Source: Octopus sinensis (Eukaryota). From it: 64,000 bases of DNA. The position numbers were made by a program, and so were the translations under genes. Under the pieces are notes generated by a model, which had not been told where the DNA came from, made no database searches, and worked only from the letters and a program-made list of their open reading frames with translations. The DNA lies in contig NC_043001.1 in assembly GCF_006345805.1 (NCBI RefSeq), positions 29,574,001-29,638,000 of the forward strand. Reading direction: 5' to 3'. This document shows, piece after piece, positions 672 through 60,800 of the stretch. How positions within the stretch are numbered: position 1 is the stretch's first letter; every line of letters begins with the position of its first letter.

Positions 672-803
672 CTTGAATGTGTCTTCAACTGACGATGAAA
701 GAGAATTCTTTATTGATACATCTCCTGTAGTGGGGGATATTGTAAAATACACAGCAGCTAATCCATCACCAGTAATTGCATAGGTGATTGTTCGAAAAGG
801 TAA
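672..803 (-). CDS. Cadherin exon B14 (44 aa, [32 protein letters not shown]...TFK)
   Basis: tttcaag acceptor, gtaaa donor, 132 nt. Confidence 0.9.
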
Positions 804-3800
804 CTTGAAAAAAAGAAAAACAATTGTATAAATAGAATTGTATGTTTACAAATGAAAGTAAAGAGCAATCAAAATGAGGTACAAAGTCTATATTTATTGA
901 AAATCAGTTGATGATTCCCTACAGTGCTAACAGAGTTTTATGTATGTTATATGTGTGAGACTGTCTTTCCACACATCACCCTGAGATGTACTTGGACACA
1001 CCATTAGTGATGTTTTGGATCTTTCAACATCAGACACCTCCACCAAAGTGACTCAGAACTGTCACTAGCTATCCTTAAATCCTTAGAAATGTTTTAGTAT
1101 TGAAGTGCCTTCAGGTCCTGTGTATGCAGGCTGAGGTGCATTTGTAAGCTAATAGTGCAGTGCTTGAAATTTTCCAGCATTAAACTGCATATTGCTTTGT
1201 TCAGCCCACATGTATATTGCTCTTAGATCCCACTAAAAGCTTGTAATATTGTCAGGGTTCTTTATGGGCTGTGATAATTTCATCATCAGTGGTGCCCCAG
1301 CATGGCCGTGGCCTTTGGGCTAAAACATTTCTAAGGATTTAAGGATAGCTAATGACAGTTCTGAGTCACTTTGGTGGAGGTGTCTGATGTTGAAAGATCC
1401 AAAACATCACTAATGGTGTGTCCAAGTACATCTCAGGGTGATGTGTGGATACATACATAGGACAGACTTCTAGGAGAAGACACTTGCCCAAGGTGCCACA
1501 CAGTGGGACTGAACATTGAACCATGTGATTGGGAACCAAGCTTCTTAGCACACAGCCATGCCCGCACCTATATATATATATATATGGCCGTTTGCCAGCT
1601 CTGTCTGGCAACCGTGTCGGTGGCACGTAAAAGCACCATCCGTTCGCGTCCGTTGCCAGCCTCAGCTGGCCCCCGTGCCGGTGACACGTAAAAGCACCAT
1701 CCGTTCGTGGCCGTTTGCCAGCTCTGTCTGGCCCCGTGTCAGTGGCACGTAAAAGCACCATCCGTCCGTGTCCGTTGCCAGCCTCGGCTGGCCCCCGTGC
1801 CGGTGACACGTAAAAGCACCGTCCGCTCGTGGCCGTTTGCCAGCTCTGTCTGGCAACCGTGTCAGTGGCATGTAAAAGCACCATCCGTTCGCGTCCGTTG
1901 CCAGCCTTGGCTGGCCCCCGTGCCGGTGACACGTAAAAGCACCGTCCGTTCGTGGCCGGTTGCCAGCTCTGTCTGGCCCCGTGTCGGTGGCACGTAAAAG
2001 CACCATCCGTTCGTGTCCGTTGCCAGCATCGCCTGGCCCCGTGCCGGTGACACGTAAAAGCACCATCCGTTCGTGGCCGTTCGCCAGCTCTGTCTGGCAC
2101 CTGTGCAGGTGGCACGTAAAAAACACCCACTACACTCGCGGAGTGGTTGGCGTTAGGAAGGGCATCCAGCCGTAGAAACACTGCCAGATCTGACTGGGCC
2201 TGACGAAGCCTTCCAGCTTCACAGACCCCAGTTGACCCATCCAACCCATGCTAGCATGGAAAACAGACGCTAAACGATGATGATGATGATGATGATATAT
2301 ATATATATATATATATATATATATGTGTATGTATGTATGTATGTATGTATGTATGCATATATATATATATACATACACACACATAAATATACATAAATAT
2401 ATGTATATATATATATATATACATATATATATATACATAAATATATATATTATATTCATAAATATATATATATATACATACATATATATACATGCATAAA
2501 TATATATATATATGCACATATATACATACATATATATATATATTCACACATATATACATATATATATATATTCACACATATATGCATACATAAATAGATG
2601 CTCTTTTACTCTTTTATTCTTTTACTTGTTTCAGTCATTGACTGCAGCCATGCTGGAGCACTGCTTTGAAAAAAATGTAGCGTGGAGTTAATAATACCAA
2701 ATCAAATTTACACATATACACAGACATACCATTACACTAACTATATATGTGGCACCAATAATACTTATTTCTTTATTGCCCACAAGTGGCTAAACATAGA
2801 GGGGACAAACAAGGACAGACAAAGGGAGTAAGTCGATTACATCGACCCCAGTGCATAATTGGTACTTAATTTATCAACCCCTAAAGGATGAAAGCCAAAG
2901 TCAACCTCGGCGGAATTTGCACTCAGAATGTAACAGCAGACGGAATACCCCTAAGCATTTTGCCCGGCATGCTAACAATTCTGCTGCCTTAATACTTGGT
3001 TACCTTGACCATTTCGAAGATGGACATATGCATACTCAACAAGCATATGAGTTATCTGTCCCTGACGATGTAAGTCTGGTTATCATAAGTATACAACAAC
3101 ATATGTTTCTTCTAAATAAGACTAAAATCACTCAAAAGATATCTGAAAGGAATATTAAAATGGTAATTACTTACATAAGAATCAGCATCTGTTGCAGAAG
3201 CTCTGAACATTAAGCTGCCAACTGGAGAACTTGGTAATAATGTAATTTCATAGGGAACATTCACGAATTGTGGTACGAATAAATTCCTGATGACAGTGAT
3301 CGTTAGTTTACCTGAAATTTCTTTGGGTGAAATTGGGCCTTTTTCTTCTGCACTAACAGTAAGCTACAATTTAAGGATATAAACATTTTAAAAGGTAAAC
3401 TGCTGTAAGTGAAGAATAATAATAAAATAAAATGAGAACTATTGTTTTTAAGAACTTATATTATAATTGAAATACAGAGAACATAAATACCATAAAGCAA
3501 AATGTATTGTGAAAAGGACTGACTTACTTCAAATTGGCTTATTGTTTGATTACTTCCGAAAGGAAACCTGGTGAAAATTTTGCCACTTATTTCGTCTATA
3601 TAAAACATGTCATATTTATCAACGATTTTGTACAGAATCTGGTTGTTGGGTGGCTGAAATAGAGTCAAATATATAATTTATTGTAAAAGATAATTCATAA
3701 ATTTGTACACACACATGCACAAATTATGACATATATAAATATATATGTATATGTATTATATATATATATATAATATATATATATATTATATATATATATA

Positions 3801-57800: not shown

Positions 57801-60800
57801 ACGACGATGACAGCAATGACTGTCGCCACCGCCACCACCAACACCACCACCACCATCATCATCATCATCATCATCATCATCGCCCCAGAGCAAAGTCTGC
57901 TAAAGGTACCCATGGTACAAAGTCCTAGTGTTAAGCTAGGTCGCAGATTAACTCTTCTACCCATGTAGACCAGAGTTGCATTTAAACTCAGAACTCAAAA
58001 AAGCCAGAATTTCACCAGACATTTAGTCCACCAGTTTTTACAGATCCACCAACCTACTGTCCTGTATTGGCTAGTTTTTATATCAAATTCAATCGGATGA
58101 AATGCAAAGCTGATCTTGGTGGAATGTTGAGCTCAGAGAAGCAAGTAGAAGTACAGTGAGGCATTCTATCTAATGCCCTAATAATTGTTCTGGCAATTCA
58201 CTCCCATCTGACATAAAACCTTTTCTGAAAATGGCAGGAGCATAGCAACTTTCATAATGCCTCAATATATGAGTTTATTTGTACCTGGATACTGCTCGTT
58301 AAATGAAAACTCATAAAGCAGAGCAATCATTTCCCATAGTAGCAATGTTATAAATCATAATTCGTTCCCAGAAAAATATTTTACCTCTAAAATTTATGAT
58401 ACTTGTAAATAAACGACAACTAAACAATAGTAGAATGTAAAGAATATTTTATGTAAAGTAAAAAGAATGTCAAGATCATTTATAATAAAAAATATTATTA
58501 TAATCACTTGTAGACATAATACCCAATTCACAAGCACTCATACAAGGACTTGTAGATTTCTTTTTAAAAAACATGTCTAGAGTTGATTGCTTAGAAGAAG
58601 CATTTTTACACATGCTATAAATTTCTCGGTAGCATGCAGAAGTATTTGCTAAGGTAATAGAAACTTTTGCACTTCATACAAAATTTGGATCTTGTGCTTG
58701 AAAAATAAAACTTATAACTCCAGAGTCTCGTCAAGTGGGTCCTCGTGAAGTGAGGTATTGCTGTACTATAATCTTAGGTTTTATGTTTACTTGAAAAAGA
58801 CATGGAAATTTTATTTCGATATGTACACCTTCGAAACAGTATGACATTATGTGAGTGAGGTAAAGAAAAAGAGAAAAATATTACTCTTTTACTTGTTTCA
58901 GTCATTTGACTGTGGCCATGCTGGAGCACTGCCTTTAGTCGAGCAAATCAATCCCAGGACTTATTCTTTGTAAGCCTAGTACTTATTCTATCGGTCTCTT
59001 TTGCCAAACTGCTAAGATATGGGGATGTAAACACACCAGCATCGGTTGTCAAGCAATGTTGGGGGAACAAACACAGACACACAAACACACACACATACAT
59101 ATATATATATATATATATATATATATATATACATATATACGACAGGCTTCTTTCAGTTTCCGTCTACCAAATCCACTCACAAGGCTTTGGTCGGCCTGAG
59201 GCTATATAGTAGAAGACACGAAGGTGCTACGCAGTGGGACTGAATCCGGAACCATGAGGTTGGTAAGCAAGCTACTTACCACATAGCCACTTGAGAATAT
59301 TTAGATAAGTATTTTTCCCATTAGTTTTTACATAATTAATTAACAATATAAACAATCAGTGAAATCCTAAATAGAACAGGGTAATCAAAAAATACCTGCA
59401 AATCAGCATCTGTTGCACGAACATTAAATATGGAAGTATTCAAAGCAACATCATAATTTATACTTGTACTGTAAGGAGCACTAATGAAAACTGGAAGGAA
59501 CTGGTCTTTTATGATTTGGATCCTGACGATAGCAGTAGCAGTTTTTTCTGGCTCAGAATTATCACTAACTTTTACAGTAAACTGAAAATTAAAAAAATTA
59601 AACACATTTTACATTATATTGGAATACACTTGAATTTGAAAATTTTAAGAGTTGTACATTGCCTTTCTTTTAAGTAAGGGTTATTAAATCAAAATTAAAA
59701 AAATTTAAATAACTGTATTTGTTTGAAACAAAAAAGGAAAAACAACATACCTCCAATGGGTTAGTAGTAGAACTGCTTAGCATCTTCCGAAGACTAATCA
59801 ATCCACTTCCTGGTCCTACATAAACGTAGTCTGTGATTCCAGCTGAGGGGATTATTGAATACCCAAGAGTATCCTGATATTGGAAAGAATATATTACAAT
59901 GTATTTGTCAATGTAAAGTGAAATAACAAATTAAAAAAAAAAAAACACTGAAAGTACATTTTATATGGATGTAAGGCAATTATTGTAGCAGTACTCAAAT
60001 CTTCAATCTCTACTCTCGTTTTAATTTGTTACTCAGTTACAGTGCCTCTATATTATTAGGAAATAAACAGAATGAGACAATTGGGTACAGCTGATTGGAT
60101 ACTGACAATTTGGCATGGCTGACTGGACATTCAGCCTGTTTTGGTGACAGTACTTTTTGTCACTAGAGGCACATACACACATGCCTGTGCATGCATAAAT
60201 ATATACATGCAGATAGGGTGAGAGAGAAGGAGAAAGAGAGAGAAAGCAGGAGTGGGAAACATTACAACTTATTAATTGAACACTTCCCTTTCATCAGACA
60301 CAGAGAAATATGCTTACACACATAAACAGAGGGAGAGAAAGTGAGAGAGATTGAGTTAGGGAGAAGAGATCAAGAACAGTATTAAAGCCAGAACAATGTT
60401 AAAATGTCTGATGTCAAAGAAATTAACACCAAATCAATAATATAATAATAATAATAATAATAATAATAATAATAATAATAATAATAATAATAATAATAAT
60501 AATAATTGTGTACAGTGCTCAGGTGCACTACAACTCATCTAAAGTGTATATATAATCAGGTGTAGTTTCGGCGGATTTCGGAAAGCATGAGGGCCTTAAA
60601 AGATGCAGTGTCATGGCAGTCAACAACTGACGCAGGCAGTTTATTCCATGCTTCAGCAACTCTGAGCGTGAAAAAATGTTTCCGAAAGTCATGGGAGCTG
60701 TATTGTTTTCTGACTTTGTAGGCATGTCCACGTGTATTAGACACATGGAGATCAAAAAGGTGTTCAGTGTTGTTGTTGGTGAGGTGGTTGATAACTTTGT

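Follow-up and report, generated by a model that had tools for sequence, protein, structure and literature searches.

Two alternating classes of cadherin repeat in a giant octopus cadherin

The long cadherins Fat, Dachsous, PCDH15 and CELSR1 are chains of extracellular cadherin repeats (ECs), in which some linkers are Ca2+-free or partial, and such non-canonical linkers form bends or elastic elements (PMC5120219, PMC12038025). The 7D-cadherins (LI-cadherin/CDH17 and Ksp-cadherin/CDH16) arose when an ancestor with five ECs gained a two-EC unit. Their EC1-2 resembles EC1-2 of classical cadherins and their EC3-7 resembles classical EC1-5, and the EC2-EC3 linker between the units is Ca2+-free, more flexible and interrupts the usual arch (PMC8427231). 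An octopus cadherin that is highly expressed in suckers has been described as having 77 ECs, or more than 70 (PMC6339937, PMC6062618). Here, we analysed a stretch of 64,000 nucleotides (nt) of the Octopus sinensis genome (contig NC_043001.1, positions 29,574,001 to 29,638,000; "the window"), which carries part of a giant cadherin gene. Albertin et al. 2015 and Wang & Ragsdale 2017 are reportedly the sources of the 77-EC octopus cadherin, and Tsukasaki et al. 2014 are said to have described non-canonical linkers as bends or elastic elements in long cadherins.

The cadherin peptide of the window aligned with residues 2957-4448 of the Octopus bimaculoides protein XP_052824186.1 (LOC106874390, "uncharacterized protein"; P0103 in our set), at 82.4% identity (1,489 amino acids in 1,492 columns). 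This protein was located via the cluster of the nearest database protein, P0001. Its 7,919 amino acids and 75 ECs fit the literature description, and thus the window very probably carries the mid-part of an orthologue of that gene from another octopod. We consider it likely that the window encodes 14 mid-protein ECs of the LOC106874390 orthologue, and that most of the ectodomain of this cadherin, past about eight N-terminal ECs, is a super-repeat of two EC classes, X and Y, which grew from an X-Y pair. The gene and higher-order domain repeats as such are known. As far as we could check, a sustained two-EC super-repeat with uniformly non-canonical linkers of the Arg-Asn type has not been described for a cadherin. 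The secondary sources searched describe neither a two-EC period nor non-canonical linkers for the giant octopus cadherin, but the primary descriptions may mention either.

EC classes in the window, the orthologue and its relatives

On the minus strand, 28 consecutive phase-0 exons were rebuilt (A0 to B13, 63195-672), which amount to 14 ECs with two exons per EC (Table 1). All 28 have an AG acceptor, a GT donor and phase-0 junctions, and the spliced peptide is 1,489 amino acids long. Each A exon (60-64 amino acids) spans a junction, from the last part of an EC through the linker into the following EC as far as its DxD motif. The B exons (41-51 amino acids) hold the mid-part of one EC. Pfam Cadherin (PF00028) matched 13 stretches of the peptide (453.9 bits vs a gathering cut-off of 28.8, E 3.9e-139). 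Hidden Markov models (HMMs) of the exons, built from obvious pieces, recovered all exons, and their sole extra match was a frame-broken copy of A6. The array is open at both ends of the window, with the gene continuing on each side. The surrounding DNA is AT-rich and eukaryotic, with many microsatellites and transposon remnants. An earlier note on this stretch had proposed a two-EC (four-exon) repeat between 672 and 59581. These limits are exact, with 672 being the 3' end of B13 and 59581 the 5' end of A1. A0 and B0 (63195-59751) lie outside them and belong to the same array.

ECs were numbered from 0 to 13, each consisting of the second part of the A exon and the B exon of the same number, plus the first part of the following A exon. 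Odd-index ECs were assigned to class X (the "even" exons of the earlier note) and even-index ECs to class Y (its "odd" exons). In a multiple sequence alignment, identity between ECs at lags 1 to 7 was 0.253, 0.318, 0.268, 0.298, 0.263, 0.312 and 0.243. Identity was higher at lag 2 than at lag 1, as the proposed repeat predicts. Among the 1716 possible 7/7 partitions of the ECs, the strict parity split came first when ranked on Smith-Waterman scores and third when ranked on identity.

The columns that discriminate X from Y are spread across the entire domain. The X consensus reads PxFxxxPY ... G-D-x-x-A-P-x-F-F ... L..D....Y.LRV.AYD ... RN.N, and the Y consensus ... YF.INP.TG ... V.A.D.G.P ... 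R[ND]. X is marked by a Pro four residues after the Phe of PxF (F+4; 48%), G-D-x-x-A-P in front of FF, an acid where DRE has its Glu (73%), LRV.AYD and RN.N. Y is marked by YF.INP.TG, V.A.D.G.P and an Arg followed by Asn or Asp.

Three motifs had first drawn attention to the alternation within the window. A Gly eight residues before the YF-type Phe is present in 7/7 X and 2/7 Y ECs (Fisher p ~0.02). All the strings that the earlier note had quoted are there. The acid of the XEX motif, called "PE" in the note, is found after alignment in 6/7 Y ECs and 1/7 X ECs, as claimed. Pro at F+4 occurs in 6/7 X ECs, but its supposed absence from the other class was wrong, as A12 has PQWGSLPP (1/7 Y; p = 0.029). 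These motifs had been presented as three separate features. They all mark the same set of ECs, and thus are one signal, not three.

Alternation extends over most of the O. bimaculoides protein. An HMM search gave its 75 EC hits. The first eight ECs did not alternate, and from about EC13 to EC74 the X/Y string alternated with the exception of two short slips. Up to lag 16, all odd lags had mean alignment scores of 73-81, and all even lags had scores of 96-109. After removal of the ECs orthologous to the window, lags 1-4 still scored 78, 107, 75 and 109. The G..A..YF motif generalises outside the orthologous stretch (11/17 vs 1/18, p = 0.0003). Spectral clustering of this protein alone, which was partly informative only, set the C-terminal Y-type ECs apart from the rest; clustering of ECs from several proteins (below) gave a cleaner result.

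The same pattern was found in more distant proteins. P0001 extends ~1,650 amino acids upstream of its match to the window, and HMMs trained only on the X and Y ECs of the window read its 14 independent upstream ECs as a perfect Y-X series. With these HMMs, ECs 0-17 of an oyster protein also alternated perfectly, as did most ECs of a chiton protein. Long alternative registers between the window peptide and P0001 were all offset by multiples of ~212 amino acids, i.e. two ECs. Position-blind clustering of 103 full-length ECs from 7 proteins gave two classes, which differed in 80 of 96 adjacent pairs (p = 6e-12), and in which the window reads 1010101010101. The relatives with linkers of the Arg-Asn type ("RN linkers"), at 26-33% identity to the window peptide, come from oyster, limpet, chiton, sea slug, zebra mussel and the annelid Owenia. 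Alternation is common to most of the oyster, chiton, sea-slug, mussel and annelid relatives.

In the oyster protein (P0003, Magallana gigas), ECs 15-17 and 20-22 (residues ~1628-1943 and ~2158-2410) are near-identical, with a shift of five ECs. Because of the shift, ECs 18-20 are three consecutive X-type ECs, and the parity signal of the protein as a whole is lost. Such stretches suggest that a block was duplicated recently, or else that the assembly holds a duplication or the isoform is an artefact.

Origin of the array

In the simplest history, an ancestral X-Y pair, or a multiple of this pair, would have undergone repeated tandem duplication in an early lophotrochozoan, prior to the divergence of molluscs and annelids. 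Long conservation would have followed this expansion, with the alternation kept because the two EC-EC junctions differ. The earlier note had likewise proposed growth by duplication of a two-EC unit. The even-lag excess, the two-class clustering and the two-EC registers agree with this, but blocks of other sizes were duplicated too. The window peptide is collinear over its full length with a limpet protein (687 bits vs 490 bits for the best shifted register), and ECs 0, 1, 3 and 5-8 of the window have their best limpet matches in consecutive order. The array therefore predates the cephalopod-gastropod split. Every octopus EC has phase-0 introns at the same two positions, and as a result unequal crossover between introns keeps the reading frame. 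This easy, frame-preserving block duplication suggests that the introns were already part of the duplicated unit.

Several observations weigh against this reading. A neighbour-joining tree of the 14 window ECs has a nearly odd/even topology, as the earlier note had predicted, but the exact split occurred in only 32 of 300 bootstraps, EC3 grouped with the Y ECs and EC11 sat on a long branch. As this support is too low to serve as proof, we relied on the lag, permutation and clustering tests instead. The phase slips of the octopus protein lie at ECs 41-44 and 58-60, and the near-identical duplication in the oyster protein, shifted by five ECs, breaks its alternation. Alternation is thus not obligatory. 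The whole-protein parity contrast was not significant in oyster (z = 0.9) and limpet (z = 0.6), both of which alternate locally. Beyond the stretch orthologous to the window, the missing XEX acid did not generalise (8/17 vs 10/18), and Pro at F+4 did so only weakly (5/17 vs 2/18). In a Mantel-type co-duplication test, X-X similarities tracked those of the adjoining Y-Y pairs only weakly, with r = 0.29 when X(i) was paired with Y(i+1) (p = 0.058) and r = 0.14 when it was paired with Y(i-1). The four-exon form of the repeat holds in the octopus gene, but P0006 (L001 1001-5221, ENA assembly ERZ25074796) has 12-14 alternating ECs in one uninterrupted open reading frame (ORF) of 4,221 nt. The four-exon unit therefore need not be ancestral, and intron loss or later gain has to be assumed. 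The identity of XP_052824186.1 with the published 77-EC sucker cadherin is a very probable match by length and EC number, and the Ca2+ stoichiometry and the structural period discussed below are read from motifs only.

Some of these observations would also fit convergent structural constraint in place of shared descent. In that case, duplications would have involved single ECs or blocks of whatever length, and the alternation would have been imposed afterwards by selection for two junction types. Odd-size block duplications such as the oyster five-EC shift do occur, the co-duplication test was not significant, and bootstrap support for two clades was low. A two-EC period was also found in unrelated-looking cadherins with canonical linkers (P0032, P0045, P0048 and P0050), which suggests that such a pattern can originate more than once. 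We regard convergence as unlikely all the same, since the even-lag excess is a similarity of whole domains and not of a few motif columns, the discriminating columns are many and spread over the domain, and long gapped alignments appear only in registers shifted by multiples of two ECs.

Two-EC periodicity could also be a general property of giant cadherins, and hence unremarkable. Among all analysable homologues, the mean z was 0.31 for the 59 without RN linkers and 3.65 for the 11 of RN type. Of the three RN proteins that lacked a whole-protein signal, one was an exon-skipped model and another a fragmentary one, and the third was the oyster protein with its phase-breaking duplication. Five of the 59 homologues without RN linkers had z > 2.5, and beetle Fat (P0024) gave a weak signal (z = 2.4). 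No two-EC period was detected in vertebrate Fat3, Fat4, Dachsous, CDH23 and PCDH15 or in fly Cad99C (z from -2.3 to +1.4), which makes a general property very improbable. The phenomenon is uncommon, but as five proteins without RN linkers show it, it is not unique to the RN-linker family. Strong two-EC periodicity was seen in P0032, P0045, P0048, P0050 and P0074, which have few or no RN linkers (z = 3.0-7.4). As a separate observation, vertebrate Fat3 (P0012, P0014, P0021) and a Pomacea "cadherin-23-like" protein (P0043) had a peak at lag 5 (105-115 vs ~67-95 at other lags), which hints at an old duplication of a five-EC block in cadherins of the Fat3 type.

Another concern was the assembly. 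The only run of N in the window, a gap of 100 N inside the A6-B6 intron, is flanked by a duplication, in which the left 1,012 bases copy the right 1,020 bases with small indels. Each copy begins with a TATG-type microsatellite and carries exon A6, and the left copy ends at the gap. The left A6 copy (~39113-39290) has four indels (+1, -3, -1, -1) relative to the intact A6, which break its frame. The duplicated stretch is not found in the O. bimaculoides orthologue. It is probably an unmerged assembly overlap or a haplotype at a spot that is hard to assemble, outside the coding sequence. The spliced A6/B6 junction (...AFDFDNQ|APYNTLDFS...) aligned without gaps to the O. bimaculoides orthologue, to the limpet protein (38% identity, 347 columns) and to an Elysia protein. 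Since all introns are in phase 0, the gap does not affect the reading frame across it. No exon is hidden by the gap, and the odd/even count is unaffected. A duplication of 1 kb and 97% identity, with an exon copy, does adjoin the gap. However, it is extremely improbable that this artefact made the periodicity or the exon count, because the ECs are only ~25-45% identical to one another, the peptide is gaplessly collinear across the gap intron with the limpet protein as well as with the O. bimaculoides RefSeq protein, an independent sequence, and the extra exon copy is frame-broken and unused.

Chance, or motifs picked after the fact by the earlier note, can be dismissed as having a negligible probability: the motifs were loosely defined (the G-x-x-x-A "type"), each gave only p = 0.02-0.10 in a 7 vs 7 Fisher test and two failed to replicate elsewhere in the protein, but the motif-free tests were strongly significant and replicated in independent sequence, and the negative controls were flat.

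Linkers, predicted Ca2+ sites and fold

The 13 RN-type linkers of the window read x-[RK]-[ND]-x-x-x-P-x-[FW] or a variant of it. No DxNDNxP motif was found in the window peptide, and the canonical set of a three-Ca2+ linker (XEX, DRE, DxNDNxPxF, DxD) is not present in full. In the O. bimaculoides protein, ECs 0-7 (residues 109-972) have canonical DxNDN motifs before ECs 0, 3, 5 and 7, mixed with non-canonical ones, and RN-type linkers start only after EC7.

Columns were mapped by alignment to the solved CELSR1, with n-R-N-l-n-p-P corresponding to D-x-N-D-N-x-P and L-t-e-D to L-D-R-E. Family-wide, an acidic residue was found at D100 in 15-22%, at D103 in 5-15% and at D67 in 0-5% of junctions. 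N102, both Asp of DxD and the A.D.G.P Asp (D195) were kept in 79-98%, and position x101 was Arg or Lys in 82-95%. The linker chemistry alternates with the EC classes. At position N102, X-to-Y junctions had Asn in 90%, whereas Y-to-X junctions had Asn in 41% and Asp in 44%. The E69 position was acidic in 73% of X-to-Y and 23% of Y-to-X junctions, and E11 (XEX) in 56% and 82%, respectively. Towards the C-terminus of the octopus protein, in its last third, even the presence of the RN motif alternates (14/18 after X vs 2/11 after Y, p = 0.003).

EC11, which is covered in part by exons A11 and A12 (10568-10747 and 4770-4952), is the most degenerate repeat. It has lost DxD (GITNP) and the A.D.G.P Asp (VRNINPN). 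Both losses are also present in O. bimaculoides ([13 protein letters not shown]), and thus are old and tolerated.

The retained residues (N102, DxD and the A.D.G.P Asp) are what we take to be the ligands of Ca2+ site 3, by the classical E-cadherin assignment. As only site-3 ligands are kept, linkers without D100, D103 and D67, but with a near-invariant Arg or Lys at x101, would probably bind at most one Ca2+ each. The remaining ligands differ between X-to-Y and Y-to-X junctions, which would give the filament a structural period of two ECs, or roughly 9 nm. Replacement of Ca2+ by the x101 Arg was considered and is kept as a conjecture only, since the side chain that canonical linkers have there is not among the Ca2+ ligands.

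EC7-EC10 of the window (X-Y-X-Y) were modelled with AlphaFold2 from a 21-row alignment of in-phase units, and the model consists of four seven-strand beta-sandwich domains (mean predicted local distance difference test score 90.6, predicted template modelling score 0.57). A Foldseek search with this model returned only multi-EC cadherins, with CELSR1 EC4-7 on top (E 3e-33). The global template modelling scores were 0.35-0.49, with root-mean-square deviations of 9-14 A, a range in which real angle differences and model uncertainty cannot be told apart.

The earlier note had suggested that alternating linker types may give a zig-zag or a helix. It is possible, though doubtful, that the RN-linker cadherins of molluscs and annelids are a structural class apart. 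In place of the canonical three-Ca2+ site, nearly all of their junctions would be single-Ca2+ or Ca2+-independent and Arg-stabilised, and the two types would alternate strictly. The octopus protein of ~75 ECs would then be a filament of ~0.3 micrometres that repeats every two ECs, as a zig-zag or a helix, and its unusual mechanics would fit a structural role in suckers.

Other elements of the window and relation to known systems

The introns carry several repeated elements (Table 1). An ORF of 406 amino acids in the B4-A5 intron encodes a reverse transcriptase (Pfam RVT_1, E 1e-18), as part of a long interspersed nuclear element (LINE). Short ORFs in the A6-B6 intron give peptides near-identical to it (e.g. 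[32 protein letters not shown]), and therefore represent a second, degraded LINE copy in the opposite orientation. An element of ~300 bp, resembling a short interspersed nuclear element (SINE), was found on both strands at at least 10 intronic sites, with 77-91% identity. It has an internal tandem repeat of ~61 bp, expanded to ~10 units at 1584-2127, and explains the recurring "[16 protein letters not shown]" ORFs. A further repeat of ~200 bp, with copies 81-91% identical and terminal inverted repeats of ~43 bp, looks like a miniature inverted-repeat transposable element (MITE). The long low-complexity ORFs are trinucleotide microsatellites, in introns or beyond exon B13, and are not coding.

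Table 1 Coordinates of exons, assembly features and repeated elements in the window.
Feature	Coordinates	Strand	Content	Evidence or remark
Exon A0, 63 aa	63007..63195	-	Upstream EC end, linker TRNLNGPIF, EC0 start (Y)	AG acceptor, GTAAGT donor, phase 0; A-exon HMM E 2e-24
Exon B0, 41 aa	59751..59873	-	EC0 middle (Y)	AG/GTATGT splice sites; match to O. bimaculoides orthologue
Exon A1, 62 aa	59396..59581	-	EC0 end, linker IKDQFLPVF, EC1 start (X; PVFISAPY)	
Exon B1, 41 aa	57535..57657	-	EC1 middle (X; GILSAPSYF)	
Exon A2, 62 aa	57100..57285	-	EC1 end, linker DRNPSPPSF, EC2 start (Y; ILEI)	
Exon B2, 42 aa	54300..54425	-	EC2 middle (Y)	B-exon HMM E 5e-5; splice sites
Exon A3, 63 aa	53002..53190	-	EC2 end, linker RKNLFAPQF, EC3 start (X; only X EC keeping the XEX Glu, without Pro)	
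Exon B3, 43 aa	51418..51546	-	EC3 middle (X; GDGNIASYF)	
Exon A4, 62 aa	51072..51257	-	EC3 end, linker KRNLNPPFF, EC4 start (Y; IEEN)	
Exon B4, 51 aa	48549..48701	-	EC4 middle (Y; 8-aa insertion)	
Exon A5, 64 aa	42779..42970	-	EC4 end, linker IRNDHSPVF, EC5 start (X; PVFHATPY)	
Exon B5, 43 aa	40948..41076	-	EC5 middle (X; GDNDAKNMF)	
Exon A6, 62 aa	40226..40411	-	EC5 end, linker NRNMNTPGW, EC6 start (Y; VLEI)	Intact copy, right of gap
Exon B6, 47 aa	29727..29867	-	EC6 middle (Y)	A6/B6 junction confirmed by orthologues
Exon A7, 63 aa	28086..28274	-	EC6 end, linker IQNENSPYF, EC7 start (X; PYFVNEPY)	
Exon B7, 44 aa	26599..26730	-	EC7 middle (X; GDDSAPLYF)	
Exon A8, 63 aa	23849..24037	-	EC7 end, linker [10 protein letters not shown], EC8 start (Y; IAET)	
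Exon B8, 46 aa	19612..19749	-	EC8 middle (Y)	
Exon A9, 63 aa	18909..19097	-	EC8 end, linker RKNNNKPVF, EC9 start (X; PVFTNLPS)	
Exon B9, 44 aa	14987..15118	-	EC9 middle (X; GDAFAMNKF)	
Exon A10, 62 aa	14266..14451	-	EC9 end, linker NRNFNTPQF, EC10 start (Y; INDI)	
Exon B10, 44 aa	13354..13485	-	EC10 middle (Y)	
Exon A11, 60 aa	10568..10747	-	EC10 end, linker VHNSCPRF, EC11 start (X; PRFNNLPA; DxD lost, GITNP)	
Exon B11, 44 aa	7427..7558	-	EC11 middle (X; GQDDSASFF)	
Exon A12, 61 aa	4770..4952	-	EC11 end, linker ERNQFGPQW, EC12 start (Y; VYED)	
Exon B12, 42 aa	3528..3653	-	EC12 middle (Y)	
Exon A13, 63 aa	3175..3363	-	EC12 end, linker IRNLFVPQF, EC13 start (X; PQFVNVPY)	
Exon B13, 44 aa	672..803	-	EC13 middle (X; GDGLAAVYF)	Gene goes on past the window
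Assembly gap, 100 N	39917..40016	.	Inside A6-B6 intron	Only N run in the window
Duplicate of 40017-41036	38905..39916	-	3' part of B5 and broken A6 copy	96.9% identity over 1028 nt
LINE fragment	44336-45556	+	406-aa ORF, B4-A5 intron	
Second, degraded LINE copy	34296-37707	-	Short ORFs, A6-B6 intron	
SINE-like copies	1584-2294, 5475-5727, 9075-9193, 16594-16775, 25705-26034, 32313-32623, 42044-42141, 55410-55532, 61300-61650, 62495-62693			
Repeat copies of ~200 bp	6199-6396, 9365-9560, 21051-21247, 47654-47811, 58884-59080			
Low-complexity long ORFs	199-531, 11696-12566, 57573-57968		Glu/Gly-rich, poly-Asn/Asp, poly-Asp/Gly	

Several RN-linker relatives have database names of the type "protocadherin Fat 4-like", which led us to consider Fat4 membership; it was rejected. 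In Fat and Fat4, the chain has ~34 ECs, as against 75 in the octopus orthologue, and leads into EGF-like domains, laminin-G domains and a transmembrane segment. In the precomputed Pfam lists of P0001 and P0003-P0005, no EGF (PF00008) or LamG (PF00054, PF02210) domains are on record. DxNDN linkers are absent from the RN-linker relatives with such names and from the window peptide, and the identity of this peptide to vertebrate Fat3/Fat4 is lower (24-26%) than to the RN-linker relatives (26-33%) or to the octopus protein (82%). In the XP_052824186.1 model, no 19-residue hydrophobic, transmembrane-like segment and no obvious signal peptide were found, and the model ends inside an EC. Either sequence is missing from the model at both ends, or the protein differs from a conventional type-I membrane cadherin. 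Membership in the 7D-cadherins was rejected as well, since these have seven ECs, a short cytoplasmic tail and a single EC1-2 duplication, whereas the window by itself has 14 ECs and the orthologue 75.

The giant sucker cadherin is counted among the cephalopod novelties. The two-EC super-repeat, the uniformly non-canonical RN linkers and a design common to oysters, limpets, chitons and an annelid make the build and behaviour of its ~75-EC chain a tractable problem, as a single X-Y-X fragment should capture both junction types of most of the molecule. If the junction types do differ in angle or Ca2+ dependence, this would bear on the spacing and elasticity of very long extracellular cadherins. 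The array is also a clean example of higher-order domain repeats within the cadherin superfamily, and the automated "protocadherin Fat 4-like" names are misleading for the RN-linker family.

The closest known system is the giant cadherin of O. bimaculoides, with the same RN linkers, X/Y alternation and gapless collinearity; its identity to the window is 82%, not ~100%, as it comes from another octopod. A strong two-EC period is also present in P0032 (XP_061179373.1, "protocadherin Fat 4-like" of the oyster Saccostrea echinata) and P0045 (z = 5.2-7.4). Unlike in the octopus family, canonical DxNDN linkers alternate with non-canonical ones in P0032, which has almost no RN linkers, and P0045 has 8 DxNDN and 3 RN motifs over 20 ECs. 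Both look like a family separate from the RN-linker cadherins, and the periodic proteins with few or no RN linkers may represent another family that has a two-EC super-repeat independently.

Block-duplicated, non-identical domains are also found outside the cadherins, in the 7- and 11-domain super-repeats of titin, the 7-module super-repeat of nebulin and the alternating G5-E units of SasG/Aap. Like the octopus cadherin, these have a filament period longer than one domain. Their folds and context are different, and the likeness is an analogy without a family link. Among cadherins, CELSR1 is the closest solved structure by both sequence and fold. In Fat, Dachsous, PCDH15 and CELSR1, non-canonical linkers are sporadic among DxNDN linkers, whereas in the octopus protein they make up essentially every linker beyond the N-terminal eight ECs. 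The lag test, which covered Fat, Dachsous, CDH23 and PCDH15 of these and related long cadherins, gave no two-EC period for them, unlike for octopus. The 7D-cadherins acquired a two-EC unit, which is comparable to the duplication of such a unit proposed for the octopus cadherin. In them, it happened once, in a protein of 7 ECs whose other linkers are canonical three-Ca2+ linkers, whereas in octopus the alternation runs over ~65 ECs.

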